Positions 888-56,695 of a stretch of 64,000 nucleotides of DNA are shown here, in pieces (within the stretch, counting starts at the first letter, position 1; every line of letters begins with the position of its first letter). The notes below the pieces were generated by a model. It was not told the origin of the DNA. It was given only the letters and a program-made list of their open reading frames with translations, and ran no database searches. Position numbers and translations under genes: made by a program. The stretch is taken from assembly GCA_028023455.1 (NCBI GenBank), contig JAQFVV010000004.1, positions 18,662,001-18,726,000 on the forward strand, in the 5' to 3' direction. Source of the DNA: Epiperipatus broadwayi. Its lineage: Eukaryota > Animalia > Onychophora.

Positions 888-1570
888 AAACAGGCAAAAC
901 TCTCCATACAGTATTGCAACCCAGTGCAAACCAGAGTAATCAATGGATGCCAGAAGGCTTGTGCATAAAATCCCCATCTAGTGCCTATTCATCCAATATC
1001 CCCAAACTAGTTACTGGCTTGTGGAGCCTTGGATTTGAGAGCACTGCACCTAGATTTTAGGATCTAATGCAACCCTCCAGCAGCCATCTTTTATCTCTAC
1101 TTAACTACAAAACTATGAATCTTAAATTGAAAACACAATAATATTTTCAATCCAAGCTCATTAGCTTATATAGTCATATAGGTCTGAACTCAGTTCAGTA
1201 CCTATACATTTTGGTGTTTTTGGTTCTTTAATTACCATATCCACCACTATCCTATTAGACAGGATTGGTTTTAAGCCAATAAACATCACATGATTACCAT
1301 TTCTTATGCTTGTTTATAACTATTGTTAAAACAGGCAAAACTCTCCATATAGTATTTCCACTCAGTGGAAGCCAGAGGGCAAACGAAGGCCACAAGCCAG
1401 AAACTAATCTGGGAATATTGGATGAGTAGGCACTAGATAGGGATTTTATGCACGAGCTTTTTAGCATCCATTGATTACTCTGGCTTGCACTGAGTGGCAA
1501 TACGGTATGGAGAATTTTGCCTGTTTTAACAACAGTTATAAGCAGCATAAGAAATGGTGATCATGTGAGG
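888..1570. mobile_element. Hammerhead-carrying ~450-bp repeat (non-autonomous Penelope-like/retrozyme), locus 1: one unit + partial unit + inverted arm
   Basis: 10-bp TSD tttagagtta at 878-887 and 1571-1580; unit period 441 (890->1331); inversion near 1377-1383. Both ribozymes here are broken: core deleted at 991-1034, 5'-truncated at 1383-1423. Confidence 0.88.
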
Positions 1571-2458
1571 TTTAGAGTTAGTGATGCCATATTATATGTA
1601 TATAAAAATGCACTTATAATAATTGTATAAGTGAATTAAAACAGTCTTTTAAATACCCATAGCTCCAAATAAAGAATTCTGAAAATAAATAACATTACTC
1701 ACCAGGCCTGAAAATTGATTAGTGAATATTTGAATATTCATTTCATGCTTGTTTTATCCTATAACTTAGAAAAGCTACATATAAATATGATCATACTGAA
1801 AATAATTATTGCCTTTTTATATTAATAAAGCACTTTTTTTAAGTTTCTGCATTACGAAAATGATTATTTGTGAGCTTCAGATCATGAAACTTTGATTCAT
1901 GAAACAGCTTGTTATTGGATTAAGAATATGTGAAATCACAGACAATTCAAACAATTATTGAAAAAGACTTCAGTTGAAGTGCATTAAGCTTGTATCAAAA
2001 TATTTTATGTAAATATATAAGTAAAATTTTAGGTGTTTATAAATATATAATGAGTAACAAGTTATGTTGTCATTATATCTTTTGAATGAAAAAAGCAAAA
2101 GAAAGATCCAATGTTATAGTTCATTCTACACACATATATAATAAAAGACAAAGCACTCTAAAACCTTACCAATATCCCTCTAGAGAGAATGTGATGCATA
2201 AAATAATACTTATCTGAGTAGATAAATGACAAGTGATAAGGATTTGATGTTTCTTCCCTATGTTATTGTCTAACTAAAAAGGCTAGATATCCTTTTAGCA
2301 ATAAACAGTTGATAGCTGGATAGATGATTGTAGTTAGATAAAAGTAAAAATTCTACGCTTATTCCAAGATGAATAATTTTTGTAATTTCACCTCGATTTA
2401 ATCTCGGGTCATGGACACTATCAACAAATAAATAATCACTATGTCATGAGACCCTTCT

Positions 2459-2461
<3 letters not shown>

Positions 2462-2490
<29 letters not shown>
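2462..2490. repeat. (TA)n microsatellite
   Basis: Uninterrupted TA run. Confidence 0.95.
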
Positions 2491-2493
<3 letters not shown>

Positions 2494-2669: not shown

Positions 2670-2902
2670 ATCTTTTCTAGATATTTCCATCAATCCATCT
2701 AGTTTTGTGTCTTTGTAGAATGGAGATCCAGAAGCTGCATATCGGACATCAACATAAGGAGGTTTAACTGTTGTATTTCCCAAAACAGTAAATATTAAAA
2801 CCTTTTCTGAACTTGTTCCAGCCAATCGAGCAATTTCTCGCCTCAATTTATTGTATTTACTTTCTCCCTTTTCATCATCAATAAAATCTTCAGCTGTAGT
2901 TC
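2670..2902 (-). CDS. CadN: Cadherin exon, 233 nt, phase 1-0, NC (SEA-like) domain
   Basis: ttaattag|GA ACT ACA ... AAA GAT|gtgagt. Encodes GTTAEDFIDD...VDVRYAASGSPFYKDTKLDG; the GSP motif at 2721-2729 matches the non-chordate cadherin cleavage motif. Confidence 0.93.
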
Positions 2903-5123
2903 CTAATTAACATTTAAATATAATAATTTGTGAAATACACAGTTATAAATGATATAACATTACTAATAATGATTGTTTATATCAACTTTAGCTAACACTG
3001 TAAAAATGATCAATTCAAATATTAGTCACTAACAGACACAGAAATATAATATAGTTACACTCGTATTAATTAGTATATCAGAATATTCAAAATTTTTATA
3101 ATATTAACTATTTTTTACAATTATAATTAATAATATATTTGAAATAATTAAAATATAATGCTTCAAAGTTCTTTAAAAATAACAAAAAAAAAAAAAACCA
3201 CATTAACTTTAATAAAAAAACAATAAAAATCATTAACCAAAAAATATATGTGCAGTCCTCTAATTATATAAATCAACTTACATAAATTCAAAAAAGTGAA
3301 ATATTAAAATAAAAAAACTGATGCATAAGTTAAAATAGCCCTCATTTTTAATTTGTCTCATGTTATAATAAGAACATCTTTTATGATATATTGGAATGTT
3401 AATTTTATTTATTAAAAAATATTTTCATTATTTCTGTAAGATGATTAATGATAAATATGCACTAAAAAAAAAAAAGAAAGACTGATATAAAATTTGGCTA
3501 ACGTAATAAATCAAGAACTTGTCATATGGTAAGTGGTCGTAAATGTGTAATATTTTATCAGATAGTTTAAAACTTGAGGCGCAAAATATCCATTCATAAT
3601 ACTAGTACAAACAACAGTATAATCATCAAATATAAACTGCATAAAAAATATTCTGATGAGATGCAGTAACATTTGAACTTTATTGCTTAGAACTGCATTA
3701 TTTCTTTAATACTTAATCACAAATCTCAGTTTATATTAGGCAAGTATCCAAAATATCATCAAAAGCAAACAAGAGTTCATAGTTTAGTTCAATTCTTTAA
3801 ACAATATCCATAACATATGAAGATAATATTATAATCGCAAGTGCTATCTTAATTTGCTTATCAAACAATATCACAAATTATAGAATTAAAAATTAGCAGC
3901 ATAACAATCAGTTATAGAAATGCTGATACCAACAAACTTTACAGGATCTTCCAGCATATTTTAGTATAGATTTACATAAAATTAAATTTTAAAAAAAAAA
4001 AAAAAATTATCTTGCAATTTCCAACAAAATATAGCAAAATTAAAATAGATAATAATTTGTGTCACTTTGACAAATACAGCCTATAGTCATAGCTTTCATG
4101 ATCTTGTTAAATTATTTTCAACATCCGCAATAATCCATTTTATCATTCTATTATAAAATTGAAATAATCAATAGGCACTAGAGGATAGTACCAACCAAAT
4201 CACTAGAGTAAATTCTGGTTTTTATGAGTAAAAGAGATTTGGGTTTGCATATACAGACATACAGCAATTATGCTGATGTAAACTATTAACCAGAAATTAG
4301 TCTGGGGATTTAATGTAATGTCCACTGATTATTAAGTTTACACTAAATAACTCTGAAATAGATTAAGTAATAAAGTGAATCATTTCCTTTAATGAAAACA
4401 CCACCATCGGAGGACTACAACTACTTTGTCAAGATTTATTACAAATGAAGCCTTACTAATCTTAAAAATATATTTTCAAATATGAGTTTATCACTCTTTC
4501 TTAATAAACTGGCAAGCTTTCTAGAGAATAAAAATTATATCAGTCCTTTCATTACCACATGTGTAACATGCTATCAATTACTTTACCTGAAATTTAAAAT
4601 TCATTACTACTCTTGTCTCAATTCTTTAAATACAACTTTAAAACATATATTATACTATACTATTAAATATTTCTTAATTGAAAACAATTACTAAAGTTTC
4701 AAGGTAAATGAAATAAAAAGAAAAACTTAAAACTTTGACAATTTAAAAATTAAATTAACTCGTGTATTCTAAGTAAAAAAAAAAAAATCAATAAAATTAC
4801 AGATATCAGAGGAGGGGTGTTAAAATTTTTTAGGATGTAATGTTTTTGTTTTTCTTTTTTTCAATGGATTCAAAAATTATCTTATACATATGCACAATCA
4901 TTATTGTTCAGTATCAAAATAACTGTCTAGTAACAAATACTTTGTTACAGCATTTTCTTAAAATGTAACAAAAGCAAAAAAAAAAAAGAGAGAGAGAGCA
5001 GAATAAAATTTAGACAAAAAATAATAAAAGTTTTGAAAAATAATCATAAATATAGTATTAATATATATATATTTAATATTATCACAGAATATAAAATATT
5101 CAAATGTCAAAATATATATGTAC

Positions 5124-5420
5124 CTGTTATTCTCAATGAACCAGAGCTGAATACTGCTTCATCTCTAATTTCTTTGATATACACGTTTACATCCCCTGTG
5201 ACAGTTTTATCATACTTCTTGTCATATACATTCACTTGGAAGCTATATGGTACCCGCTGAATTGGTGTGTTGGCTTTCATAGTCAACATACCAGAATGTT
5301 TGTCCAACAAAAAATATGAGGGTGGAGGTTGAGTCTTCCAAGTGAATTCTTTGTCATCTAAATCGTTGTCATCAGGATCATCAATACTAACCTGACCAAT
5401 TGGAGTTTCTGGCAATTTCC
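5124..5420 (-). CDS. CadN: Cadherin exon, 297 nt, phase 1-1 (last EC repeat)
   Basis: ttaaacag|GG AAA TTG CCA ... ACA G|gtaca. Encodes GKLPETPIGQVSIDDPDDNDLDDKEF...EAVFSSGSLRIT. Confidence 0.95.
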
Positions 5421-6778
5421 CTGTTTAAAAAAATTATAAATATATTAAGCAAATGGAAGTAATTAAACAAATCAAAGTGTATTATTATTCAATTGCTTAA
5501 AAATTTCCACAAGTCAAAAAAAAAAAATTATATGAAACTATTGACAAAATAACTGGATTAAGTCTGAACCTTTCAAATTTAAACAGAGTCATCAAATTCT
5601 TTGTGCCGGGTACAGTGGAGCAGACGTAACCAAAATTATTTAATATTTCAAGATCAATAAATGACTGTATTCACAAAAGACAGAAAAGGAAATTTATTAA
5701 ATTCAACTAAAATTTAATAAAAAACCAAAAACAATGCTTTCTGATGACATTACAAAGGAGTATAGACAAAACCACAACATACAATTATTATATTACTACT
5801 GAAATCAAAACACAACTAAATGCTTCAGTATATATTATATTGTGAGTTTTGCGAAAAAAAATTACAGACAAAATCATCTCCAAGCAACTGATTTTAATAT
5901 GTAAGCTATTATAATAAATTAATGGATACATGATTACTAGAATATTGGCATATGATTGGCAAATTATTGTTTGCACTTTTCCCAATCAGTGAAATAGCTT
6001 AAGTCTATGATTTGAAAAAAAAAAAAAAAACTGCCCATCAAACTGTCTCCAACTATCCACTCAGATAAAAATTGAGTTGAAAAACATGGCATACATAATA
6101 TATATATCCATTATAGTTTTTCCAATCATCTAATTTTAATATTATTGAACCTCTTAATGGACAAATCTTTAGCAATAAATGAGAAATTGACATTCTCTTA
6201 TTACTTCCTCACATAAAAAGATACAGTTTTATTATTATTATTATTGTGCTATATTATATTATAGTTTCTCATGTATTCTATCTAGAATTGAATTATATAA
6301 TTTGAATAGTATTTAAATAAATATTAAGCCATTCTTCATGGAAAAAAGATTCAAGTATTATAAAAGATAACAATGGTAGATATCATTCTCTCATTTGTTA
6401 TTTAATATGAGCCTACAACTTAATATTTAAATTAAATGACTAATAGGATCCTGTTCTTAATCCAATGTTTAACTGCATGGATTGTATAATATTGGAAGTG
6501 GCAATAATATTGAAACAGTCTGCAGCAAGAAATGAATTGGCTCCAAAAACATTCAAATAATAATGTGAAGATATAATGTGTTGTTCCATGCTGAATAAAA
6601 TTAAAAAAACAAGAAAATATGATATAGCTGTCTAAATTATTAAATACCTTTTTATATTTGAAATATTATGGGGAAAGGGGACATAATTTTATTGACTTAA
6701 TATTTTAGTCAAAATAAGGTTTTTCAAAAATTAATTCTCAAGAAAAAATTATTCTCACCCAATTCTAATATATATATA

Positions 6779-7736
6779 TACCTGGGTGTCTTTTTACGCA
6801 GATTTATTTAACGCAATTTTGAAGTTACGCGATCCACGTTTCTCCGGAAGTCGAACTTCGATAATGCGCTATTACTTTAAATAATAAATTCCGCGTATAT
6901 TGATAGTCATAGCACATTATTGGAATTCGACTTTCATCTTAGTAATTTCAATATTTTCAGTGCTTTATAATAGTAAGATTTTATGCAATAATGAAATTAA
7001 AATCATGATTTCCACATTTTATATATACACACATTAAATTTTACAAGATTATAATGTAAATTTGTTCAAACATTGTGCGTGTTAATTTTGCATTTTAAAT
7101 CACATTCTGTTTTTGCTTTTTAAAAAAGAACGTAATCAATTATTAATCATTTAGTGTCCCCAAGTTTATTTTTAAAAGGTGAGTAATAACAGTGGGCACA
7201 ATTAAAATTGAAAATTAAAAAATTAAAGACAAAAATAAGAATTTAATTTTTAGTTGTTAGATTAATTACTAATTACGTTGTCACCAGAAAACCATTAACA
7301 CAACGTGAGTGACATTGGTGCTAGTTGTATTTCCTCTTGTGAAGAATCTGATTTTTTACCAGTTTGCAAACGAACCTGTTTATCGGCAAATAGTGATAAT
7401 AATTATAACGTGTATAAAAAAATGTAAATTACTGTAAATTATGCATAAAAATATATTGTTTTGAATAAAATTAAATATTATAGTTAAAAGAAGTTTGTCT
7501 TGTATCAATTTTTTTCAAATTTGAAATTTTTTATTAGTCACATTTTATTTCCTTATTTTTTTTTTTTGCGCGAATTTTAAAGTAATTTTACATTGGTGCT
7601 TTGCTTTTACGCGATTTTTGAAAAATCACAGTCCGTATCCCCCCTTTTTCAAGGTAAGTTACGTTTATTTTTGCGCGATTTCGTTTGCGCGTGTTTTCTG
7701 AGGAACCTATCTATCGCGTAAAACGAGACCCAGGTG
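6779..7736. mobile_element. MITE, Tc1/mariner (pogo/Tigger-like), copy 1
   Basis: Imperfect TIR cctgggtgtctttttacgc / gcgtaaaacgagacccagg; TA flanks within a (TA)n tract; near-identical copy at 31031-31980. Confidence 0.85.
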
Positions 7737-8885
7737 TATATATATAGCAGCAATAGCCTTATAGTCCTTGCACTAATCTTTTCACCTGTAAGTTCACATA
7801 TTCTATGCAACTTTAATGCTACTATTTAATTTTTGTATGAAATAGAGTTTGCTAATAGATACATTATATTTATAACATTTTTTTCTCAATAAAATAATGT
7901 ACAGGTTCTATAATACATTCTTATATTATGAATAAAAAAATATTCAAATTTAAGTTTAACTATTGATATATTTTGCTTTCATCAGAATTTCAATATTTGG
8001 AGTTAACATAGAACATTTTTAAATTTAACGCAATCAGCTGTAACTCCGTTTTATTTTTACCAATTTCACTGATAAAAATAATTTTTGTAAAGAACAAAAC
8101 TGTCTTACAAAGGAGGAATAATTATAAAATGTTAAAATTACTTATAGACTTGCTCTAGTTTAGTTCTCAAAATTAGACAAATATTTACTTACAGAATCAA
8201 TACTGATTTTTTTTTTTAAGTTTCACTCGATAAATTTGTAGTTTTTTTTTTTTTATCCCCCTCAATTTTTAATAAAAATTATTTTCAGATTACAGTAATG
8301 CTAAACTTCTTGCTTTCTGGTTAACTAAGAAGGAAGTACTACATAAAAGAGTATTTTTATTAAGGTCAATAATCCTTGATTCTTTCCCAGAAACAAATCT
8401 ATTCAATAAGATTTCATCTTTATGTACACATCAAAATAGATGCTACAAGAGTAGATCAATGCAGTTCATTTTGTGTTCAGAATTAATTATTTTAAATATA
8501 CATCAAGCAAACAGTTTCCAAAAATTCAAACTATTATGTATTATATTATAAGCCAAATCCTTTTGCTTACTTCACACTACTTATGTCAAAATCTATGACA
8601 TCAGTGTTTGTATTTTCATATGTCAAGCATTCATGAAAAATATTCTCACTAAAGAGAAATAAATTTGTTTCTCAAAAAAAATTCTATGGCATACAACTCT
8701 CTATAGTCTTTGAAAATGCATATCTGCTACATAGTCACCTCGTTATCTGATAAATACATATTAAATACCTGTAATTTCAATTTATTCTGCTTTTATTTGT
8801 ACCTCGCTTTTTCGTCATGTATATATGAATGTGTGAATGTCCATAAGGAATTTTTCATAAAACAAAAGAAAGAAAAAAATTTTAC

Positions 8886-9095
8886 CTTTATAATTGTAAA
8901 CAAAAATATCTTTTTTTCCATCAAAGGGCTCATTGTCATTAATGTCACCAATTTCAATGGTCAGAATGCTAGTACCATTCATTGATGTCTCCCCACTATC
9001 TTGAATGATTATAGGCATATAGTAAAATTTCTGTTTCTCTCGATCAAATTCACGTAGTGATCGAATTTTGGCACTACCTTCGCCATTAAAACCAG
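8886..9095 (-). CDS. CadN: Cadherin exon, 210 nt, phase 1-1
   Basis: ttttcttag|CT GGT TTT AAT ... AAA G|gtaaa. Encodes SGFNGEGSAKIRSLREFDREKQKFYYMPIIIQDSG...IGDINDNEPFDGKKDIFVYNYK. Confidence 0.95.
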
Positions 9096-9539
9096 CTAAG
9101 AAAAGTACAAAAGAAAAAAAGGATTTTAATTAATATTAAAACTTTAATAAAAATGAAAAAAATAACTTTGTTAACTTGCTTAAAAAATAACTGAATTATT
9201 TTCTGATTATAACATATCAGATGAATTCTTGTAATTGTGAAAATAATTAATGTTATTTTATATATCAATTTTTACTATTAATTATGCTTTTTATTTTTAA
9301 TTTAAACTTAGTGACTAAATAAATTAGCACAAATAAATATATGGGTATAAAATAAATATATATCTAGAAGCAGTTGCAAAACTAATCCTTTGTGAATAAT
9401 ATTCTACAATTTTATATTATATAATACAAAAATATGTACTTTTATATAAAATTTAGAATTTCACAATTACTTGAATATTAACAGTATGCATATCCTTATT
9501 ACCAATGTAAAATCTCAGATACTATCTAGAGCTTCAAAT

Positions 9540-11050
9540 GCGCATATCACCATCATCACTTCCAATTGTTATCATTCAACAGCTTTCTTATCCATCTAAT
9601 ATACAATTTTTTTTCTAGATCATTCACAATCTATTGGGATCCAGTTTAAAGCTTCAAATGTCCATCTATTGTTATCTCTGCTAGCAATATGTCCATACAG
9701 TCTCCTAACTCTTTCAGTAATGTTTAATGACACCTATTTGTTTTCTCATTCATATATTTCATTTTTACTCCCCCCTTGTTACTCCCAAAGAAAATTTCAC
9801 CATATTTTGTTATGTGGCCTGTGTTGTTGTTCTATTAACTGTTCAAATTTTAAATATGTGTATAAAAGTAATAAAACACATCTACTTTAAACTTATGAAA
9901 TATTTCCTTTAAATATTAAGTTATTTCAAGCAAAAATGCTCCATCTAAATTTAATTCTATATTTCCATCTGTTTTAATAATTTAATCAAAGTATTTGTAG
10001 TTGTTAACTACTTCTAATTCATGATTGCCAAACTTTATTTTTTTCTTTTATGAAATATTATATTAGGGATTTTTTTTTTTTTTGTATTACTTATAGTCCT
10101 TTCTTACTTTATGATAACTTCTGCAACCAGTACTGTAAAAATAATCACTTAACAGCAAAATGTAATGACTTAAATAATCTCAATGTACTTTTATTTCCTT
10201 AGCTTCCCATTTTAATCCGAAAAATATTTATAAAACCGCTATAAAAAAGTTTTGGAGATATAGAATCAACCTGTCATATATCCTTATCACTATTGATTTA
10301 CTTAGTATTATCATGTAATCTACTACTGTATTTTGATAAATGTTCTTCAATACTATAGATTTAATATCCTGATGGTCCAAAGCTTTATTCATTGTGGAAA
10401 TGCTTATAGAATCAAATGCCTTTTCATAATCTACAAATACAATGACAATTTATACTCATTGGTCCTTTCTATAATTTCTCTTGAGGAATCAAGCTTATTC
10501 TTTTGAGTGATTTGCATCCAAAGTTCAATATAAATGAATTATAATTGATAGCAGATTGATAGACCTATAAATTTCTAATACCTTTTAAAATATTAATATC
10601 ACTATTGCAGTCTTTCAACTGCATCTGTTAATGCATCTTCATCATTTAGACATTGGATATATAATATTGGCAACAAGTTTTCTATTTTTTTCACCAACAT
10701 TTTTTAAGATATCAATAATTCCATTATTTTCTGGGCTTTTCTTCTCCTCAGATTTGATTCCATGTATCATCTCTTCATTTGAAATGCTTAGCAATTTAGA
10801 TGTTGTAATTGTAGAAGTTGCTTTGGCTTTCTTATTATAATTACTATATAATTCTTTGTAGAACTCTTTCATGTATTTTATGAGGTCAACCTTTTTTTAA
10901 GTATTACTTCCATGTTTCAGAATATTGCTGAAATTATTTTCTTCCAAATATCACGATGTTGTTTTAAATTTTTAAGACTTTTTTTCTTTTATAAATTTTC
11001 TTGCCAATTTACATGTGCTAATTACTATCTTATAAATAAATAAGATTATT
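9540..11050 (-). mobile_element. RTE-like LINE fragment, heavily decayed
   Basis: Minus strand encodes RT motif FVDYEKAFDS (10409-10437), a KSPENNGI pre-RT segment and a post-RT GHIAR-like C-terminus. Boundaries approximate. Confidence 0.75.
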
Positions 11051-11803
11051 TTATTTCTATAATACTAGTTGTTCTCAGGTGTTATAGTTGCAGTAATAAT
11101 AGTTATCTAATTTGATATCAAAAGTTATTCTAGAAATCATTTTAGAAAAAACATTAGACAAAAATGTTATAAATATTGTTTGCTTACATAAAGATATGTT
11201 TTACTTTCTTATCTGAAATTAACCTATATATACCTACATTTAGATATAGTAATCTTAAGACAGATTTCAATATATTAACAATTTATTTTAGATTCAAAGT
11301 CTCTCTTTAATTAATTATGTTTTTGTTCTAAAAGTATCCATTTTTAATAAATTATGATCCAGATAACATCCTAAATAAAAAAGTGCTTAGATATAATTAT
11401 TAAACAAACACAAAAAAATTTAATTGACTTTAATAAATTAGTGTTAAGATTAGTAATAATGTTCTTAGCTGTGATAACGAAAATTGATGTTTTAAAATAA
11501 ATATAAAACAAAAAATGCAGATAGTTATCATTTATGAAAAATGATTTCAGAGATTTAACAAAAACTGAAAACAATTATTGGAAATCTAATTAAATTGAAA
11601 TATATAAACAATATAATTTATCCAAATATATAGTTATAATTACAAAAATCCTGTTAGAAAAACACAACCATTGCAAAACATAACTCTATTGAAAGCTATT
11701 AACACAGGCAAAACTCTCTATACTTATTGCCACTCAGTGCAAGCCAGAGTAATCAATGGATGCCAGAAGGCTTGTGCATAAAATCCCCATCTAGTGCCTA
11801 CTC

Positions 11804-11861
11804 ATGCAATATCCCCAAACTAGTTTCTGGCTTATGGCCTTCATCAGTGAGGAGCCTGGAT
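11804..11861 (-). ncRNA. Minimal type I hammerhead ribozyme (GUU triplet)
   Basis: Minus strand reads UCCUCA CUGAUGA AGGC cauaa GCCA GAAA CUAG UU UGGGGA: intact core, paired helix I, palindromic helix III, A.A mismatch at the base of helix II. Confidence 0.8.
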
Positions 11862-12250
11862 CTGAAGAGCACTGCAGCTAGATCTTAGGATCTAATGCAA
11901 CCCTCCAGCAGCCACCTTTTATCTCTTCTTAACTACTAAACTATGAGACTTAAATTGAAAACACTATAATATTTTCAATCCAAGCTCATCGGCTTATATA
12001 GTCATGTAGGTCTGAACTCAGTTCAGTAACTATACACTTTGGTGTCTTTAATAACCATAGCCACCACTATTCTATTAGGCAGGATTGGTTTTAAGCCAAT
12101 AGACATCATATGATCACTATTTCTTATGCTTGCTCTTAACTGTTATTAAAACAGGCAAAACTCTCTATATGTATTGCCACTCAGTGCAAGCCAGAGTAAT
12201 CAATGGATGCCAGAAGGCTTGTGCATAAAATCTCCATCTAGTGCCTACTC

Positions 12251-12309
12251 ATCCAATATCCTCAGACTAGTTTCAGGCTTGTGGCCTTCGTCAGTGAGGA
12301 GCCTTAGAT
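12251..12309 (-). ncRNA. Minimal type I hammerhead ribozyme, best-formed copy
   Basis: Minus strand reads UCCUCA CUGACGA AGGC cacaa GCCU GAAA CUAG UC UGAGGA. Helix I (6 bp) and helix II (4 bp) are Watson-Crick, with ACUAGU palindrome and GUC site; predicted cut between 12265 and 12264. Confidence 0.92.
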
Positions 12310-13644
12310 CTGAGAGCACTGCACCTAGATCTTAGGATTTAATGCAACCCTCCAGCAGCTACCTTTTATCTCTACTTAACTACAAAACTATGAGACTTAA
12401 ATTGAAAATACCATAATATTTTCAATCCAAGCTCATCAGCTTATATATTCATATAGGTCTGAACTCAGTTCAGTACCTATACATTTTGGTGTGGCTTCCA
12501 CTGTATAGAGAGTTTTGCCTGTTTTAATAACAGTTGAGAACAAGCATAAGAACTAGTGATCATGTGATGACTATTGAAAGCTCTGAATGATTATATTTAA
12601 AATCATTTACACAATTTCTTTGACATTGCTGGAAATTTTTTGATCTCAATTATTTTTTCATACCAAATCCTTCTTACACTTTGCATATATACTTTTTTTA
12701 ATAATTGCTAATGTAAATCTGTATTTTCATAATGACGATGTTCATTAAAAAATAGTTTCTGTGAATCAAATGTAATCAATCAATCTGAATTCTTCTGTCT
12801 CTTAATAAAGAAGAATCACTTTTTATGTTTAAATTTTATTAATGTTTTGACTACTTTCAGGAGGTCATCTTTAAGATAATAAATGTTATATATATTGTGA
12901 CAACATATTCAGTTTGTCAAAAATATATACTGTTGATTAAATTTATATTATATATAAAAAAAAAATCCTCTAATGATTTTAAAATATTTTGGGAGAGTGC
13001 CTAAATTCAACAGGTAACACATTTAAAATTAAAAGCTATTTAAATATTAGTTTAATTTAAAAAAATGCATTTCTGTAATTATTTAGTAATTTAATATTTT
13101 AATATAATATTTAAATTAGTGTATGTGCATATATCCTTAAATGTGATTACATATACACACATTACAAGGGAATGTTCATTTTAAATAATTGTTTGGTATA
13201 TTTTATTTTTGTTTAAGCAATGACATAAAGGATTATATAATAAACATCACAAAGTATTAAGAGACAATTAATTAGAACTGAAGTGTCAGAAAATAGTGAG
13301 AATTTGTTTGTTTAGTTTTTTTTAAATATGTATATTCACTTAGTAAATAATCTTTATATAACAGCATATCTAAAAGTTAACAATATACAAATGAAATTTA
13401 ATAGAGTGTTGAATTTGCCACAAAAGAATATTTTTAAAAAACGATCTCAAAATAACAGGTTACATGTTTTGTCATTTTCTTGAAATCTGTATTAAAATTT
13501 GGTCATTTTATTACTTCAACTGATATGAAACAAAAAAATATATATCAATATTAAATAAATTGACAACTTTCAAAATATAGTTGGAAATATTTTTCTATTA
13601 GTTAGTTACCTGTAAGAGAAAAGAACAAAAGTATTGTAAAATAT

Positions 13645-28497: not shown

Positions 28498-28548
28498 CAC
28501 TTCTTCACTTCTATACCGAGGGCGCCACTAGGTCACATCATCACATAG

Positions 28549-41791: not shown

Positions 41792-41850
41792 ATCTAATAT
41801 CCCCAGACTAGTTTCTGGCTTGTGGCTATCATCAGTGAGGAGCTTTGGAT
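41792..41850 (-). ncRNA. Minimal type I hammerhead ribozyme
   Basis: Minus strand reads AUCCAAAGC UCCUCA CUGAUGA UAGC cacaa GCCA GAAA CUAG UC UGGGGA; intact core, one mismatch in helix II. Confidence 0.82.
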
Positions 41851-42416: not shown

Positions 42417-42475
42417 ATCCAAAGCTCCTCACTGATGATGGCCACAAACCAGAAACTAGTCTGGGGATATTGGAT
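42417..42475 (+). ncRNA. Minimal type I hammerhead ribozyme
   Basis: AUCCAA agc UCCUCA CUGAUGA UGGC cacaa ACCA GAAA CUAG UC UGGGGA ua UUGGAU; helix I is extended by AUCCAA/UUGGAU across a 3x2 internal loop. Confidence 0.85.
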
Positions 42476-42610
42476 GAGTAGGCATTAGATACGGATTTTA
42501 TGCACAAGCCTTCTGGCATTCATTGATTACTCTGTTTGGCACAGGGTGGCAATACTGTATGGAGAGATTTGCTTTGTTTATATCTAAATTTTAATAGAAA
42601 AAATTATTAC

Positions 42611-42747: not shown

Positions 42748-44981
42748 CTAAAATAAAATTTTTGAAATATAAAGCACAAATATATACAAATATGCTGACA
42801 TACACATGAATGTAAGTTTACCTTTCACTCTTTTCTTAAAGATAAATTTCTTGATGATGACTTATTGCACATTAGATCATTTTTTTAATATAACTTTGAA
42901 GTTTCCATATTACTCACGTTCAAGTTCAATAACCTTGTATATTTTTTTAATTTCTGAATTCATTTTTGTTATTATATTCTTTCAATTTCTATTATTTCAA
43001 AATAAACACCCTCACCTCTGCCCAGATAAAATATATTTGTTGCAAATTTTTTGTAATGTGATAAAAATGAAACTTTTTTTTTTTTAAAAAAAAAAAATCT
43101 AATGTTACATAAATAACATTCAAAACTACATTCAAAATATATATAAAATTTGAAGGCTTTCTTTTTATTCAGATGTTTTCTATTTGTATTATTTTGTATA
43201 GATTACATTTTTCTTCTGATCTTTAATAATTACATTTTATTTTATTAATTTTTAGTTGTTTTTTTTTTTACTAGAATCAATTCTTGCATAAAAAAGTTCG
43301 AATTTTCTACCACTAAGTGCCTTTGATAATATTAACTATTTCTGATAACAAACTACCCTTGGAAAAAATATTAATGAAATTTTTAGACTTCTATTTATTC
43401 TATAAAAAATTATGTGCTTTAAATTGTACTGTTCCTAACTAAAATTAAATTTTATAATTATTAACTTTTTTGCACAATAAGATTAAATGTAGTCACAATT
43501 GGATACTCTCTTGTGAATTCTTTGAGATGATTACAGAAAGAATATTTTTTTAAATTAAAGCATATTTTATTTATTTTTATAAAAATAAAATCATAAATCT
43601 TAAACCTCTACGAATTTGCAATTTTTGTGTGTGTATGTAGGCAGTGGGAGCGGAGGGGGGTATTTTCTTACTAAATATGTATAAATTTCTCTGCCAAAGC
43701 TTCTCCAGCATAATATTAATTACATTTAAAAAATTCTTAGCAGACAGAAAAATTCAAAAGTCTTAACAGACATATTAATAACAGTACAAAGACTTTTCAT
43801 AAAATGAACTCATGACGAGTATTATCCAAACATCCTTCTATCAATGTTAAAATATATTTTTCAGAAATAATGGTTGTGTAGATAATTTAATACCAATAAT
43901 TGTTCTGGAGGAAAATTAAAAACTGGTGACTTAATGCAAATCTGAATTTAGGTAACTACAAAATTCTTTTTTACAATTCATTATTATTAGTTGAGTAACT
44001 CTATAATATATAGAATATTAATTTAAAATGGTTGTCAGATAATTTCTAACCATCAAAATACACTTGCAATTTATTTTTATATCCAAATTTGTGTTTAGAT
44101 TTGAACTCAAAGGTAATATCTAAATTTGAGTTTTTGAAAGCAGAGTTTTATAACATGAGATCTTTTATAAAAGTATTGTTGATTACTGATCTTCAACAAT
44201 AAAATCTAATCAGACTAAATCTCAATTATCACATGTACTAAAACAAAATCCTAACACATAAATTACATTTTTATTGTGATCAATTTCAGGCTTGACATTT
44301 ATTTAAGATATTTAAAAAAATCTCTAAAATAATATTTCAGTAATTAAATTTGAGCATAGATTACTCCAATATATTCTAATTTGTTTTATTTTCTTACTAT
44401 TCGATCATGGTATCATTATACTTATCAAGAGATATTGAATTTCTTAAAATATATTTTAAGTCTATTATTTTATGTTCTCACACTTCAAATATGCATCAGA
44501 AAAAGAACAAATGATTTTAAAGTTATTTTTCTGACTAAATCAGCACTCTTCAGTTGGCCCAAATAACAAACTTTCAATATTTATTTATTATACACTCATT
44601 ATTCAGTTTACAAGTGCTACAGTTATTAGCACTCAATGATGATATACTTATCTAAAGACAATGACCATTTTTGAGTTAGCACTTATAATTGGAATGTAAT
44701 AAAATTTTAAGTAACTTAATATTTTTTCCAATATTTATTAATTTATTTTAATTTAGTTTTTGACACCAAATTAACATGTTCTGCTAATTTATATATATAT
44801 CTATTTTTTTTAAAAAAAAAATATTTACTGGAAAAAATAATATTCTCCAGTCTATATTATTCCACACACTCATTTTTGAATTTATATTTTAGTTATTATC
44901 ATTGATTATTAATTTATTCCTTCAACTTTTTTGTAATTTTCTCCCTTTAAACTGCTTTCTGAAATTAAAAAAATTACTTAC

Positions 44982-45232
44982 AACACTTTGGACTCTCCGC
45001 GATTATCTGGATCTTTTGCTTTAAATTGTTGTAATGTGGTGCCCACTACTGCATTCTCAAGGATTGACACGGTCAGATGTGCCTGGTCAAAGACAGGTGA
45101 ATTGTCGTTGATGTCCATCAGAGTCACCAGTACCGTGGCATAGTCCTTGGGTCCATTGTCAGCCAATCTATCCGTCACAGAAATATTCAATTTGAAACCA
45201 TTCCTTTGTTTAGGATCCTCGAAATCGAGAGG
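44982..45232 (-). CDS. CadN: Cadherin exon, 251 nt, phase 0-2
   Basis: aattacag|CCT CTC GAT TTC GAG ... GTG TT|gtaagt. Encodes PLDFEDPKQRNGF...MDINDNSPVF...AKDPDNRGESKV. The upstream intron is 100 bp. Confidence 0.95.
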
Positions 45233-45332
45233 CTGTAATTTAAAACATTTAGATAAATATAGCAAAGGAGAAACATAAAAAAATTTCTAAATATAAACAA
45301 ATAAACTATAGTTTACATATTAAAATATTTAC

Positions 45333-45592: not shown

Positions 45593-47607
45593 CTGTAAGT
45601 AATTTGTAAAAGAAAAAATAAAATACATAAAAAAATATTTTTTTAAAAACTTATAAAGACACAAAATCCTCATTGATTCTTGATAAACTAGTCGCAGAGA
45701 AAGAGCATGAAGAATTATAGGATCAAATTTTTGTTAAATGAATAGTATACTTATTTTTATACAATGACCTAAAAATAAAAACATCTCTAGAATATATATA
45801 CATATATGAGTGTAGCGGGATGTGTCAAGGGCAGAGATTTTTCTGACTACTCCACAGACAAGATTAAAAACTCATAGAAATTTGTGTGCCTAACTACTAA
45901 TCAATCAAAATGATTCCCACTTTGCTTGAAATCTCAATAACTTTTATAGAAAATACATTTAGACAACACTAACTATATGAAAATAAAATTTTACTTATTG
46001 AAGATATAACCAAAACTTCAGTGAATTTAATTGGACCACTTTAATACTGCCAAAGTAGAATCACTCACGAAATGTTTATTTTAATAACAGTGATTCTTAT
46101 CTAACTTGGAATATTAAATTAACATTACATTTACAATCTACAATTAGCAAAATTTCATTCTCAACATTAATATTGTCAAAATTTGTCTCTTAAATAAAGC
46201 TATTGGGGCTTAACCAAAGTGAAATTCATTTTGGTTGATTGACAGTTAGACATCAGAATTTCTACAATATTTTTAAATATTGTTTGTTATGTAACACAGT
46301 TACATAACACTTCACACCATGTATGTTCTCATATTACATATATGTATGAAAAATAGAAATGAGATATCTATGTGAATAGAAATAACCTTTAATCTTTGGT
46401 TCTCCTCATTTCTATTTTTTATTATAACAATCCATGGAATTATTTAATTCAATATAAGACAATTCTCTGGAGAAGTTTAAAGTAATATATGCAGAATGTC
46501 AAGAAAGATACCAGTCTTCCACATTCTCACACCTATAAAAAATAGTTTACTAAGTTTAAATCCATATAAGAACTTGGGTTTGGAGTAAAAGAGGATCCCT
46601 TTTACTTCAACAAAACAACTATTATAGGTTAATAAAAAACTTGTTTAGTTTCAGGGGTTGTCAGTTAATAGTAATTGATAATTTTTTGGAAACACCAAAG
46701 GTTAATGATTATCTTTATTTACATGGATATTACCTTCTCATTTCTATTCTATATTATAATAATAATCACGGATGTAATTTATATATACACCCACGCATAC
46801 ATTTTTACATAAGTTTTTAATATAACCATTTCTTTTCTTTTGGTTTTGTAGAAATGCATACAGCATTCACTGATCTATTAAAAATAAGTTTAACAAGTTT
46901 TCCAGTTTACAATTAAAAATAAAAACATTAATTAAAGATTTTAGTAGGATATAAAAATTAAAACATCAATTGATATTTAAATAACAATTAGCTAAAATTA
47001 ATGTATTTCTCATTTTCACTGATGAAAAAAAGATAACTTTGTTTCAAATTTTTACCCTCATAAATGATTTATAACTCATAATATTAAATATACTTTGTTA
47101 AAAATAAATATAATTTTATTTAATATTTATAGATTATTAATATTGCTAGTGATCATATTTTATTTAATAATAAGAACAATAAATTTTAAATCTTAAATGT
47201 ACGCATCTTAATAATATTAATGGTCATTCAAATATATTATGACCTCTAAAATTGAGAAGCTGTGGCAAAACTACTGTTGATAATAATCAATTGCTGTAAG
47301 TTATACTATCTATTTTCTGGGGGGGGGGGGGGGACGACTTTATACAGATATATATATTTTTAATCAATTCATGTGACTTTTTTTTGCAAATTTGCCCATT
47401 GTGAAATAAATAAAATTTAGTGAACTTTTATGAAATTAAAATTCTTTAACTACTTGATCATAATCCTACATATTTGTTATGAAAATGAATCAATGAAAAT
47501 CTCTTGTGTAACAAAATGATAAATACAACATATAAAATGTTCCACATGGAGGGTGTTGATATGATTTTGAATATATTTTTTAAAACTAAAATGACAAAAT
47601 TTAATAC

Positions 47608-47841
47608 CTTTTCTTTTTCCACCATCAGCAGCACTCACAACTATTTGGTAAATGTCGAGCTTTTCGCGATCCAGGCAGCAGATGGCCGTCCTGATGATGC
47701 CCGTATCAGGCTCAATTTTGAACACCTCCTTCCCGTTTGTTTCATTGATCGCGTTTCTCTCGATCTTGTATGTTAGCTTAGCATTTGTGCCTTCACTAGG
47801 GTCATCATAATCTAAGGCAGTCATCGTCATTACAGACCGAC
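47608..47841 (-). CDS. CadN: Type III classical cadherin (DN-cadherin-like), first exon seen in window, 234 nt, phase 1-1
   Basis: ttttaccag|GT CGG TCT GTA ATG ... AAA G|gtatt. Encodes (G)RSVMTMTALDYDDPSEGTNAKLTYKIERN...IEPDTGIIRTAICCLDREK...AADGGKRK. The CCLDRE repeat is collinear with Drosophila CadN as recalled from memory, so the symbol means CadN-like; orthology is untested. Confidence 0.93.
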
Positions 47842-50800: not shown

Positions 50801-51176
50801 TTAAAGAAATCTAGTTCAACAAATAAATACCAAATTGTAGTTAACTTGCTTGTTTTAATTTTTCTATTTTGATAATATCTCTATTTAATTCACAATCCAT
50901 GCTATAAGTCATTTCGATTGAAATTATTAACAAATATATAAAATTTCTTTGATATTATAACAAAACAAAAGCTATAACCCCCTCAGGAAATGCAAATTGT
51001 CTACCTTTAACTAAATAAGATAATGTTCATTTAAATTTTCATTAGAGTTTGAATGCATATTACAGCAGGTTTATAATAAATATCTAGCACTAAAAAATTA
51101 AGATTTAAATTTACTTTTTTTTACTAGCTTCTTGGATAAATAAAAATGGAAATCACAAATATAAGAGAAGGATTGT

Positions 51177-51487
51177 TACATTTTCATTTACCACTGTCAA
51201 ACTCCCTCCACTCACAACTTTGACGCCATCCATTTCAGATAAATACACCAATGATTATTACTAATCATTTTCGAAACTAGAGATTATCTCTAGCACAGAT
51301 ATAAACTTTAAACCTCTAGATAAATATTTTGCATATAATAAAGATATATATGAGAGATAGTGACCTGGGCCAACTGATGAGTGCTGGTTCAGCACGAAAT
51401 GCATCTTGGGGGTCATTTGCTTTTATTATATCTTTATTTATATGAATTTGAAAAGAATGGGGAAGTGTGGAAGTGTTTGTTATATCA
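51177..51487. mobile_element. Short insertion containing the family-2 hammerhead (Penelope-like pLTR remnant?)
   Basis: Flanked by direct repeats ataagagaagga(t/c)tgt at 51161-51176 and 51488-51503 (15/16 identical), a candidate TSD. Confidence 0.5.
51361..51415 (+). ncRNA. Minimal type I hammerhead ribozyme, second unrelated family
   Basis: UGACCU ggg CCAA CUGAUGA GUGCUG guu CAGCAC GAAA UGCA UC UUGG GGGUCA: perfect 6-bp helix II with canonical G10.1-C11.1, palindromic AUGCAU helix III, bulged helix I; predicted cut after 51405. Confidence 0.9.
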
Positions 51488-51764
51488 ATAAGAGAAGGAC
51501 TGTAGTTGTTTTTTCACATTATTCATCTACTTAGCTTCATATAAATAACATTATTTCCTGGATCCATTCTTCCTTAAGTGTTATTTTATCATATTGATCA
51601 TTAACAAATCACAATGCATTATTTTTCCACAAAATCCAGTTTTTGATTGATTAGTCAAATAGATTTGTTAGAAAAAATAATTTTATTTCTTTATCTTTTA
51701 AAATATCTACATTTAATGTATTTAATGTCTAAATCATGAAAAAAGTTAGTAATAAAATGAATAA

Positions 51765-52304: not shown

Positions 52305-52970
52305 ATTATACTAAATAATTGAAATCAAATAATATTTTTAAAAAAGCCTCATGTTCCTTGTTTATGTAGAAAATTTTAATTCAACTTTATATGTTCAATA
52401 TGGTGTATGTCATAAAAGTATATTTGATAAGGCTTCTGCAATCTTTTTGCAATTAATGAAAAAAATGAAGGAAATATTTTTGATTCAATATTATAAATCT
52501 GAATCTATTAATTTGATAAAAACATCTTTTAGCTTTATAGGTAGTTGGAATATTGCTATGAAATGTGAATAAGATAGAATGATTGCTTTAAATTATGGGT
52601 AATATGTTATGATTATTTAAATGTCATGTTTTTATTTATTTTATTTTCAATTTTGTTTGATTTAACGTTTGTATGTGATATCAAAACTAATTTGAATTTG
52701 ATAGTCCAATAATTACAAATTTGTCTAGAAGTTCTAATTAAAATAGTTGATTTTGTTATTTAAGTAATTACAATGACATCAAAATTATATAGACACATGC
52801 ATTTTGAAGATTTTCATTATGAATATATTTTCATTATAAAATATAAATTTTATTTAATACATTAGTGAATAATCATTGAATTGCTCATAACTATAATTTT
52901 TAACAGATTCTGGAAAATATTTATATTCTCCATCCTTTGAAAATTGATAAAGATTGTTTTTGACTACGAG

Positions 52971-53030
52971 TGTATAAATTTGTATTACTAACTCTTTATT
53001 TGTATAAATTTGTATTACTAACTCTTTATT
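52971..53030 (+). repeat. Perfect 30-bp tandem duplication
   Basis: (tgtataaatttgtattactaactctttatt)x2. Confidence 0.95.
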
Positions 53031-55978
53031 TTTCTATTGCAGAAAAGACAATAAACTTAAATCCAGTATACATAAAAATATCTATTAAATATTCTTTAAA
53101 AAATACATACACACAAGTTATGGATTGATTCAGGGCCAAATGCATGCAAAGTTTTTTTTTTTGTATAAATTTTATCATTTCTAAACATTATGTAAGAATG
53201 CTATTAAAATATGGTAATAGAAAAAATGACAAAATTCATATGAAAACACTGGCGATGTAATTAACCTTCACTAACAAAAGCAAGAGAGACAGAAGAACAA
53301 AAATAAGGACAGAATTCATTTAACAGCATGTTTATGCATTTCTGCTGCTAATAAATAATATCAAATATTTAAAATTGTAATTATTTAAAATTAAATTTAA
53401 AAACATACTATTACTATAACTTATTAATAGAAGGTGAAAATATTAACAGAATTGATAAAATTTCAAAATACAAAAAACATGTATAGAAATTTATTTATTT
53501 TTTCTTAAATAAGAAAACTGAAATAATCATATTCTTAAAAGCAAAAAAATAATGAAGAATATTTGGAATAAACTGAAAGAAAAAATATATATTTTAATAT
53601 GAACTGAGCAAAATATAATAAGACTTGGAAGAAAACAAATTTGGTTTGATTTATAGAATCTGTCTTAGTTGATGACTAATAATAACATAAAATAACCAAA
53701 TAAATTATCACATCTATAATAATAAAATATGAAATATACAGCAATGTGTATTAAGATATTAGTAACAAAATTTCCTTCTTATAAAAATCTGACAAAAAAC
53801 ATTTTAATAAATTTTAATTTAACTTTCTTTAACTCATAACACAGCAAATGATAACATTTATTATTATTCCAAGTATTTATGAACAAAAACTGTTTTCATA
53901 AATGTGTGTATGTTTTACATGTCCACTCTCATTCCAAAACTTTTTAAATAATGATACATCATAAAACATTTAAAATATTTATAAAATAAAATGATGACAA
54001 CTGATAAAACATTAGTATCACTTTATAATTAAAATAAAATCAGTCTGAATTTTGCATTTTACCAATACTATGATAATATTAGTTATTTACAAATAATTTA
54101 TATTATTCATAAAGGACAAGTAACATGTTTTTCTAAATTTAAACTATAAAAATAATAATAACTAGAATCTAAATTTTTTGGAAATATTAGCAAGTTATAA
54201 AGTATTAGTTTTCAAAGGGTTCAAAATACTTATAGGCATCTTCCCATATTAAAAAAATTTTGAATTGTATAAAAAATTAAATGTATAAATATATTAAGCT
54301 ATGCTAAAAATGTTCTATATTTTCTTCAAATAAATGACTATAAAATATTTAAGATAATACAATGTTCATTTTTCACAATTACCAGTGAAACATCAATAAA
54401 AAGTGTCTCACAAACCAAACTATCACTTGTATCAACACATACTCTTCATATTAGGAGTAAAATTATTCTTAATGTGTTCATTAATCAGAAATAAAAGTAC
54501 CAATTTAAATTAGTATATAATAAAATATATAGTGATAAATATTTTTTCAGGAAATATCTGATTGAACTATTATTTAAGTTAGCATTATTTCTCACTAACT
54601 CAACATACTTACTAATACACATTATTAAATATTATTCATAAAAAAAAGGTATAAAAAAAAACTTTCAAAAATATTTCATCTATTAGGAGATGTCTGTAGA
54701 AAATAAACCAATTTTAATACAGTGAATTCTTGATCTATAGTTTACACACATCATTTTTCTCTGCATTCATAATCTACTGGCTATGATCAGAAATTACTGT
54801 CATAGAAATATGTTTATATAGAGAGAGTTACATCATTTTCCACATCCATCATAACAAATCATAGTCCTGAAGTAATATTTTTCCATATGGAGTTTTTTTT
54901 AAAAAAAAATATGCAAAAATTATTACTGTGTGTGTAGATATATATATTTAAAAATAATCAATTTTATTTTATAAATTGATTATTTTTAAATTTTAAAATT
55001 TGCCGAAAACAGCTTTTATATGTTATTTTTATTTATGATGATTATATGACTATATTACAGCTATTGTTATATATCATTTTGTTGTTAGTAAAGATATTTT
55101 ATTATATCTATGATTTATTTTTTAAATTTTATATATATAAATGGCAACATTATGAACAAATGTTAAAATTGAAATTTGATCATTTAAAGTATATATATAC
55201 AAATATTATATAATTAAATTTTCATCAATTCTACAATATACATAAACTAATCTTATAATTTTCCTGCAACATTTTTATGTTTTCATTACTAATAAAATTA
55301 ATTTTTCTTCTAAAATTTTAATAACTTGTAGTCACAAATTGCCTATCAGTTCACTATATCCCCAAATCAATAACGCTTTAAATAATATTAAATCCCTCTA
55401 GACTGAATCATCTATAAGCAGATTAACCTGTAAGAGTTCCAATGTTTTATAGTAACTAAATGCTACAAGTGGTATCTCATTATGCTGCTAAAAAGTTTTT
55501 GTTTTATATATATATATTTCAAATTTGATTTTTTATTGTTATTATAAGCATTATTTACAACAGATATTAAAATATTTGTATAAAAAACTTAAAAAAATTT
55601 AACAATAAAATCGCAAAAATGAAGAATTAAAATTACTTTTGTCTAACAGGATTCAGTCTATTGCTTTCCATTATAATAAAATAAATTTTCTTGTTATTAT
55701 TGCAAGCATTTGTTTAATAAGTGTTACAATATTTGTCTTAAAAAGTAGGAAAAAAAATAGCAATCATTTGCAAAAGAATAAAATTTACAGGTTTTAAAAC
55801 TACAAGCAATATGAAATATCACTAAACCTGAAAAGGGGGGCATAAAATTTATACTATGCAAACTAAATTTCAAATTAATTTAATTTTTGCAAAATAGATA
55901 TACTTAACTCTTGTTCAATTAAATTAATCATATAAAATTAAGACATTTGAAAATTTATACTAGTCTATTGCGTAGAAA

Positions 55979-56695
55979 AAAACAGGCAAAACTCACTATA
56001 TATATATTGCTACACATGCCAGAAGGCTTGTGCATATAAACCCCATCTAGTGCCTACTCATCCAATATCCCCTGACTAGTTTCTGGCTTATGGCTTTTGT
56101 CAGTGAAGAGCCTGGATCTGAGAGCACAGCATCTAGATCTTAGGATCCAATGCAACCCTCCAGCAACCACCTTTTATCTCCATTTAACTACAAAACTACG
56201 AGTCTTAAACTGAAAACACCTTAATGTTTTCAATCCAAGCCCATTAGCTTATATAGTCATATGGGTCTGAACCCAGTTCAGTACCGATACATTTTGGTAT
56301 CTTTGGTTCTTTAATAACCATAGCCACCACTATCCTATTAGGCAGGATTGGTTTTAAGCCAATAAACATCACATGACCACCTCCTCTTATGCTTGTGTAT
56401 AACTGTTGTTAAAACAAGCAAAACTCACTATATATATTGCCACACACAGCAAGCTAGAGTAATCAATGGATACCAGAAGGCTTGTGCATAAAATCCCCAT
56501 CTAGTGCCTACTCATCCAATATCCCCAGACTAGTTTCTGGCTTATGGCCTTTGTCAATGAGGAGCCTTGAATCTGAGAGCACTGCATCTAGATCTTAAGA
56601 TCCAATGCAACCCTCCAGCAACCACCTTTTATCTCTATTTAACTACAAAACTATGAGTCTTAAACTGAAAACACCTTAATGTTTTCAATCCAAGC
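55979..56695 (-). mobile_element. Hammerhead-carrying repeat, locus 5: ~1.6 tandem units, no inversion
   Basis: Period 432 (55982->56414; unit 1 has a deletion); same left terminus (aaacaggcaaaactc) as the other loci; only an imperfect TSD candidate (attgcgtaga / attgtaga). Boundaries approximate. Confidence 0.88.
56514..56572 (-). ncRNA. Hammerhead variant with U3-A8 core
   Basis: Minus strand reads UCCUCA UUGACAA AGGC cauaa GCCA GAAA CUAG UC UGGGGA. The neighbouring copy (56060-56117) has CUGACAA, a C3.A8 mismatch that is probably inactivating. Confidence 0.65.

Follow-up and report, generated by a model that had tools for sequence, protein, structure and literature searches.

A 64,000-nucleotide (nt) stretch of the genome of the onychophoran Epiperipatus broadwayi (G000:C4:18662001-18726000; assembly size, 5.6 Gb), referred to throughout as the window, carries exons for cadherin domains and five insertions of a short non-coding repeat in which a type I hammerhead ribozyme (HHR) motif is embedded. 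What kind of element is this 447-nt family, and by what route has it spread? We consider it probable that the family is a young non-autonomous retroelement of the kind represented by Penelope-like elements (PLEs) and by retrozymes lacking long terminal repeats (non-LTR retrozymes). Because every arm of the insertions combines a fixed 3' end with a variable 5' truncation, the copied template was an RNA of hammerhead polarity; copying sets out from either of two fixed sites and breaks off at varying positions, the templates are longer than one unit, 9-15 bp of the target are duplicated, and integration follows the Penelope pattern. The fixed 3' ends, the variable 5' truncation, the target-site duplications (TSDs) of 9-15 bp and the varying arm junctions bear out the original prediction of a retroelement.

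All five loci assigned earlier to one non-coding unit of ~447 nt are recovered at the same places by repeat finding and BLAST (Table 1), and the unit indeed lacks an open reading frame (ORF), its stop-free stretches reaching at most 61-67 amino acids. The loci had been regarded as simple units, however, and while their membership in one family stands, most of them are pairs of inverted arms, some with more than one unit, a layout that had been overlooked. Unit positions are given relative to a 447-nt reference, the minus strand of window positions 11818-12264, in which numbering starts with the base just downstream of the predicted cleavage site (position 1) and ends with H17 (position 447). 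Across copies the unit measures 447-454 nt, and its G+C content is 39-41% as against 26.7% for the window. PLE-like coding sequence, comprising reverse transcriptase (RT) and GIY-YIG domains, was found in neither the unit, the window nor 29 family loci when four PLE proteins were compared with them by TBLASTN, and the family is therefore non-autonomous at most.

The proposed genome-wide search for copy number, carried out with a 414-nt query, gave no fewer than 4670 candidates at first look. Among the 57 best, which were scored, identity to window locus 3 is 89-95% for most, 84% for one and 89-98% for short pieces, and several of these matches form tandem arrays with a spacing of ~453 nt. Family copies were sampled by similarity to this one query, and the statistics given below describe one young subfamily; majority states were used for counting only, and no family consensus was built. 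Recent mobility, also part of the original prediction, is upheld by two insertions in particular, L003 and L015, whose arms and tandem units are 99-100% identical and whose TSDs measure 9 and 13 bp. Over 71 aligned HHR-bearing arms, the minor-allele frequency averages 0.035 per site, and private variants are mostly not common to the units within one insertion, which fits the copying of a near-invariant source followed by neutral decay. Four public runs, which represent three or more organisms, each contain 2760-12229 short contigs matching the unit, a result that speaks to presence only, no run being recorded as RNA.

The structure of individual insertions, which is an addition to the original prediction, was examined in 39 insertions with 75 arms, drawn from the window, 28 family loci and L062 (L008, which overlaps L002, was left out). 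Breakpoints are BLAST estimates accurate to about +/-5 nt, and five short inverted arms were missed with the reference used. The 3' ends of 70 of the 75 arms fall within unit positions 94-197 and form two sharp modes, at 108-122 (hereafter short ends) and at 160-181 (tailed ends), the tail consisting of the next ~55 nt of the unit, i.e. the start of the following unit. Arms range from 49 to 1967 nt and are often longer than one unit, the longest tandem arms reaching ~4.5 units (L005). Two arms are present in 27 of the 39 insertions; these are always arranged head-to-head, with 3' ends facing outward, and never tail-to-tail. Among the 21 pairs that could be classified, 20 combine a short with a tailed end, one has two tailed ends and none has two short ends, a pairing with a binomial P of ~1e-5 if the ends were independent.

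The 5' breakpoints of the arms are scattered across the whole unit, with hot spots at ~85, ~95, ~142 and 434-444. Recurrent breakpoints were seen in five arms each at 85-86, 95-96 and 142 and in seven at 434-443 (e.g. window 42094, L018 1398 and L015 1454); such positions may reflect the 5' ends of RNAs or places where templates are prone to switch. Of 36 insertions tested for TSDs, 13 are flanked by exact ones of 10-15 bp and 16 by duplications of at least 9 bp, the flank controls never exceeding 9 bp. In the window the clean TSDs noted earlier at four loci are exact and measure 10, 12, 13 and 15 bp. As direct duplications of 9-15 bp surround the whole two-armed structure, each such structure arose in one integration event. 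The arm junction differs in nearly every sampled insertion. A snap-back origin of the inverted arm, through a self-primed hairpin, was considered and discarded, the short-ended arm often being the longer one (e.g. 807 vs 73 nt). As to whether the template was a rolling-circle product or a genomic array, variants shared within insertions are enriched (17% vs 3.6%), too weakly to decide.

Within the window, insertion 3 lies nearest to the majority of the sampled copies (2-5% divergence), which had been fetched with this same locus as query. Insertion 2 contains two intact HHRs, 447 nt apart and oriented like the cadherin exons; by its sequence it alone in the window could yield RNA of unit length, and the tandem HHRs could be fed by host transcription, given that they lie on the cadherin-exon strand. 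In insertion 4, whose two arms are nearly equal in length, 273 nt of one arm (41685-41957) are 95% complementary to the other (42310-42582), with 352 nt between these segments. If transcribed within the host intron, the arms would form a long hairpin RNA and are a possible source of small RNAs. A match to the MIR8643 model at 42054-42214 (37 bits vs a gathering score of 135) is spurious and corresponds to the arm-junction hairpin of this insertion.

Table 1. Positions of the 447-nt family insertions, their arms and HHR motifs, cadherin-domain exons and the HHRs of resident PLEs (window coordinates unless a locus is named).
Feature	Position	Strand	Remarks
Insertion 1	888-1570	-	both HHRs broken; TSD TTTAGAGTTA at 878-887 and 1571-1580
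Insertion 1, main arm	885-1377	-	unit 69 through HHR to ~119; short end
Insertion 1, inverted arm	1385-1574	+	tailed end at unit ~165
Insertion 2	11698-12570	-	TSD CTATTGAAAGCT at 11686-11697 and 12571-12582
Insertion 2, longer arm		-	~1.8 units; unit 220 through two HHRs to ~121; short end
Insertion 2, inverted arm	12504-12576	+	73 nt; tail ending at unit ~168
Insertion 3	24277-24798	+	TSD TATTTTCTAATAG at 24264-24276 and 24799-24811
Insertion 3, inverted arm	24274-24389	-	short end, unit ~121
Insertion 3, sense arm	24387-24799	+	modal intact HHR; tail to unit ~160
Insertion 4	41637-42579	.	two head-to-head arms; TSD ATATCTAAATTTTAA at 41622-41636 and 42580-42594
Insertion 4, first arm	41631-42092	-	tailed, ~176
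Insertion 4, second arm	42094-42580	+	short, ~118
Insertion 5	55977-56695	-	start approximate (~55977); single arm, unit 280 through two HHR sites to ~121; internal deletion near 3' end; imperfect TSD, ATTGCGTAGA at 55967-55976 vs ATTGTAGA at 56696-56703
HHR, broken (insertion 1)	1000-1029	-	
HHR, broken (insertion 1)	1380-1415	+	
HHR, intact core	11812-11853	-	GUU in place of GUC
HHR, intact	12259-12300	-	
HHR, intact	24605-24646	+	modal
HHR, intact	41800-41841	-	
HHR, intact	42426-42467	+	
HHR, broken (insertion 5)	56070-56110	-	CUGACAA
HHR, U3-A8 variant (insertion 5)	56522-56563	-	core UUGACAA
Cadherin-domain exon	44978-45265	-	
Cadherin-domain exon	47477-47830	-	
Further likely cadherin exon	5107-5415		
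PLE HHR	L064 6297-6346		also 3162, 9430
PLE HHR	L065 4151-4198		
PLE HHR	L066 4434-4482		

Does the embedded motif have the makings of a ribozyme? The earlier count of HHRs in the window, with five intact, one of the U3-A8 type and three broken, was reproduced; U3-A8 is a known covariant form of the HHR core. The modal sequence, found without change in 21 of the 71 sampled HHRs, reads UCCUCA-CUGAUGA-A-GGC-CACAA-GCC-A-GAAA-CUAG-UC/UGGGGA, in which the slash marks the cleavage predicted to occur after GUC. The type I core (C3 U4 G5 A6 N7 G8 A9 / G12 A13 A14 / A15.1-U16.1 / H17) is complete in the five window copies and in the modal sequence. In the latter, helix I has all six of its six pairs and continues, beyond a small internal loop (AUCCAA/UUGGAU), into an imperfect rod of ~75 bp; helix II consists of three G-C pairs closed by an A.A mismatch, and helix III, with 2 bp and a 2-nt loop, is the palindrome ACUAGU. 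A structural descriptor demanding the core, at least 5/6 pairs in helix I, at least 3 bp in helix II and a palindromic helix III returns five matches in the window vs a mean of 0.02 over 200 first-order Markov simulations, which excludes chance; a looser HHR pattern returns six vs 1.43 expected.

The RNA of the unit, in hammerhead polarity, is predicted to fold into a long self-paired rod whose end is helix I of the HHR; the minimum free energy (MFE) is -145 kcal/mol (z = -5.0), and the fold holds helices I and II with the core unpaired. When genomic monomers were folded in the same way, helix I was present in 11/11 and helix II in 10/11 MFE structures. Further, in helix II, which measures 3-4 bp, an older subfamily (L012, L066) has AGC/GCU instead of GGC/GCC, a compensatory change from G-C to A-U. 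A search of the literature for the HHR sequence as a string gave no match. We present the motif as a hammerhead variant with a mismatched helix II base, a predicted ribozyme whose activity is worth assaying.

If the family is non-autonomous, enzymes for its movement might be sought among the PLEs resident in the genome, which are plentiful. A first look yielded 10242 GIY-YIG candidates, all 150 of those scored passing the Pfam cut-off, with ORFs of up to 901 amino acids; intact PLEs with ORFs of 800-901 amino acids are abundant, the dominant clade being very AT-rich, and a second PLE clade was also located. Pfam gave no match on these strongly AT-biased PLE ORFs, whose nature was read from the translation (YVDD, GIY-YIG) and from Atlas clusters. 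One locus, L064, is a 3.1-kb tandem with two intact 901-residue ORFs and an inverted truncated copy, and the last copy of this tandem bears a tail of ~66 nt. Three PLE lineages (43-48% amino acid identity) each carry, in the 3' UTR, a minimal HHR of the U3-A8 type ~300 nt past the stop codon, with the core UUGAAAA, one unpaired base 5' of helix II, a helix II of 6 bp that covaries (GACUAU/AUAGUC vs GAUUGU/ACAAUC) and ACGU as helix III. In the L064 type, the sole lineage with a mapped end, this HHR lies ~100 nt from the 3' end. The same HHR was also seen in L034, L036, L037, L039, L046, L047, L053, L054, L058-L060 and L063. The autonomous PLEs thus share a layout with the 447-nt family (HHR, ~100-120 nt, short end, tail) and have no sequence in common with it.

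The partner search covered 37 of more than 10000 candidate loci, namely 33 GIY-YIG/PLE loci and three beside the window (L031-L033), with C6351 counted twice (L037, L046). By set, these were L031-L063 (30 GIY-YIG loci plus the three beside the window) and four intact PLEs. Matches to the unit found by BLASTN in L062, L039 and L066 proved to be unrelated small family insertions nearby, and a 13-nt match (ACTAGTTTGAGGA) just past the stop codon of the L064-type PLE was dismissed as too short to count. The original prediction that a Penelope-type RT acts in trans is accordingly upheld in part: the integration footprint (partial tandems, inverted 5'-truncated copy, tail at one end) and the abundance of intact HHR-bearing PLEs favor it, whereas no autonomous PLE sharing the HHR of the family turned up among the 37 loci.

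How might such an enzyme produce the structures observed? We propose that a Penelope-type RT/GIY-YIG enzyme supplied in trans would nick the two target strands 9-15 bp apart, and that the 3'-OH of each nick would prime reverse transcription on an RNA longer than one unit, whether multimeric, terminally redundant or circular; the two cDNAs would then be joined, the point of junction varying. As a dimer, the hammerhead could process multimeric transcripts to unit-length RNA, possibly circularized as in the animal retrozymes. Since helix III is just a palindrome, a ribozyme would have to pair with a second one, in a tandem unit or on another molecule, in order to cleave efficiently. Genomic copies would decay neutrally, with the ribozyme maintained by source copies only. 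Going one step further, a concerted reaction may have left its mark in the head-to-head pairing of short and tailed ends: both staggered nicks would prime on two copies of a terminally redundant or dimerized hammerhead RNA, possibly held together by helix III, at two defined sites (unit ~118 and ~175) that each adjoin a small hairpin. We regard this extension as a long shot; if true, it would offer a concrete model for the undefined integration of Penelope elements and give the ribozyme a role in template pairing beyond cleavage.

Several results weigh against the reading that the family is a retroelement of the Penelope-like or non-LTR-retrozyme kind with a working hammerhead. No autonomous PLE with the ACUAGU HHR or the 3' end of the unit was found by BLASTN or TBLASTN among the 37 partner-search loci. 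The isolated 49-nt motif does not adopt the hammerhead fold, either as MFE structure or in cofolding. The base of helix II, a position that matters for activity, is in most natural hammerheads a G10.1-C11.1 pair; this pair is absent here, the modal sequence having A.A, the copy at 12259-12300 A-U and two copies U-A. The HHR is no better conserved among genomic copies than the rest of the unit (0.036 vs 0.035), and the only visible signs of selection on it are the majority sequence and one compensatory change. The 5' ends of arms miss the exact cleavage position: their clusters lie 4-13 nt before it and at unit ~85, ~95 and ~142, so that the copies leave no in vivo footprint of cleavage. Arms that seemed to begin at unit position 1 in fact start 4-13 nt before the site or have starts blurred by microhomology, and were rejected as evidence of cleavage. 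Finally, the lack of a covariance-model hit was among the three outcomes listed with the original prediction as refuting it, and it is what was observed: the Rfam hammerhead models gave no match for the 447-nt family, at the gathering score or at E<=10, in scans of 111 and 551 nt. An unrelated HHR in the same window (family B, 51368-51411) reaches just 16.4 bits against a gathering score of 34, indicating that the model is weak for such ribozymes.

The missing Rfam match, the A.A mismatch, the unexceptional conservation and the lack of arm ends at the cleavage site, joined by the low in vitro activity of minimal HHRs from PLEs (PMC4209133), would all suit a Penelope-type parasite with an inactive or barely active relic hammerhead, whose mobility depends on recognition of its 3' module by the RT and whose cycle includes no unit-length or circular RNA. 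We take this alternative seriously and yet judge it unlikely, as all core nucleotides and all three helices are retained in the majority sequence of a family that numbers thousands of copies, helix II has undergone a compensatory change, the HHR helices are present in the MFE folds of full units, and an unrelated family (family E, L006) has the same architecture with different helices, including a mismatch (U.U) at the corresponding place. A quite different view is that the family is an element resembling short interspersed nuclear elements (SINEs), moved by the RT of a non-Penelope long interspersed nuclear element (LINE), with inverted arms generated by twin priming. TSDs of variable length, 5' truncation and fixed 3' ends are features of LINEs and SINEs too, and the window holds remnants of a LINE-type RT (zf-RVT ORF, 58702-59406). 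However, the window insertions have no poly(A) or microsatellite tail, and the element's 3' end occurs in both arms, whereas in twin priming it is the 5' part of a single RNA that becomes inverted; moreover, partial tandems, a one-sided tail of ~55 nt and an HHR are Penelope hallmarks, and such a tail, with the same arrangement of HHR and 3' end, recurs in the autonomous PLEs of this genome. We consider a LINE origin highly improbable. Least credible of all, to the point of being nearly dismissible, is a DNA transposon of the foldback type or a miniature inverted-repeat transposable element (MITE), with long terminal inverted repeats and a hammerhead-like motif present by chance. The outer ends are mostly inverted copies of one sequence flanked by TSDs, as this proposal would have it, but the junction differs in nearly every insertion, arms vary from 49 to 1967 nt, one-armed insertions exist, TSDs measure 9-15 bp, the ends are systematically unequal (short vs tailed) and tandem units lie inside the arms. 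None of these features fits cut-and-paste movement of a fixed element.

The preferred reading, a non-autonomous retroelement moved in the Penelope manner, places the family among elements of a kind already published, as non-LTR retrozymes, PLE hammerheads and non-autonomous PLEs have each been described, and no new kind of element is claimed. According to PMC8557442, PLE insertions are often 5'-truncated and form partial tandems (pseudo-LTRs, pLTRs), an inverted and likewise 5'-truncated copy lies next to them, and just one of their ends has a short extension; non-autonomous Chlamys elements such as MRC1 have pLTRs and head-to-tail multicopy insertions. Metazoan type I hammerheads with a short palindromic helix III like the present one are likely to act as dimers (PMC4209133). 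The 447-nt family resembles PLEs in having a probably dimeric HHR near the 3' end, 5' truncation, partial tandems, an inverted copy, a tail at one end and no poly(A) (PMC4209133, PMC8557442), while differing from them in the lack of an RT/GIY-YIG ORF and in a tail of ~55 nt rather than 30-40 bp. Compared with the autonomous PLEs sampled here, it has a C3-G8 core and a helix I of 6 bp, whereas the PLEs have U3-A8, a long helix II and ACGU as helix III.

With the animal non-LTR retrozymes (PMC7229834), the family shares a non-coding unit of a few hundred nucleotides (150-450 bp in those retrozymes), a low G+C content, one type I HHR per unit with a helix I of 6 bp, a helix II of ~4 bp and a very short palindromic helix III, tandem copies, TSDs of more than 4 bp and a unit RNA predicted to be highly self-paired. 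In contrast to those retrozymes, the 447-nt family occurs mostly as 0.1-2 units in inverted arms, not in long arrays, and has A.A at the base of helix II. Plant LTR retrozymes (PMC4918200) are likewise non-autonomous and HHR-bearing and are thought to spread via self-cleaved RNA; as characterized in PMC7229834, they have type III HHRs in true LTRs, a primer-binding site and polypurine tract, TSDs of 4 bp, a G+C content above 55% and mobilization of the Gypsy type, none of which apply here. HHR repeats have been proposed to derive from PLEs, with which they co-occur, and retrozymes to be non-autonomous PLE derivatives (bioRxiv 10.64898/2026.07.22.740005). That proposal and PMC8557442 rest on similarity to PLE termini, whereas the present case rests on the integration footprint, no similarity to PLEs having been found among the 37 loci compared. 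What is new is this quantified footprint together with the parallel to the resident PLEs: through its insertion scars (TSDs, head-to-head arms, one-sided tail), a retrozyme-like HHR repeat is tied to Penelope-type integration. The copies, being young, numerous and short, also provide a clean natural collection of junctions and ends from which integration by Penelope RTs, a process that the literature calls undefined, could be worked out.

Four other HHR families (B-E), with the same architecture and different helix sequences, were encountered in the sampled DNA. Family B lies in the window on the plus strand at 51368-51411, within a segment of ~51161-51503 unrelated to the 447-nt family; it has AUGCAU as helix III and a helix II of 6 bp (GUGCUG/CAGCAC), and its score with Rfam Hammerhead_1 is sub-threshold (16.4 bits, E 0.11 on 101 nt). 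Family C, with AUACGUAU as helix III, was seen in L031 and L024. In L031, upstream of the window, an ORF-less insertion of tandem-plus-inverted layout contains three family C HHRs (4427-4472, 4909-4954 and one on the minus strand). Family D, from L033, also upstream of the window (4854-4898, plus strand), has an A3-U8 core (AUGAUUA) and AGUACU as helix III, and its HHR lies ~1.3 kb downstream of a remnant of a GIY-YIG-like ORF (L033 ORF 3287-3595). The retrozyme-like family E has two HHRs, 401 nt apart, on the plus strand of L006 (320-363 and 721-764), with CCUUCA/UGAAGG as helix I, AUCAUGAU as helix III and a helix II of 3 bp that is mismatch-closed like that of the 447-nt family, by U.U instead of A.A.

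Other repeats were also noted in the window. Two inverted repeats of ~290 nt (17418-17708 vs 19438-19725), 94-98% complementary and ~1.7-2.0 kb apart, may belong to a young terminal-inverted-repeat element or to a further insertion of the two-armed type; a hammerhead was not seen in this region. Two dispersed families are represented by pairs of copies that are 84-96% identical, the one at 6777-7677 vs 31029-31935 and the other at 28370-29194 vs 58937-59580. The second of these overlaps the ORF at 58702-59406, whose zf-RVT match (E 3.5e-5, below the Pfam cut-off) marks it as a remnant of a LINE-type RT.

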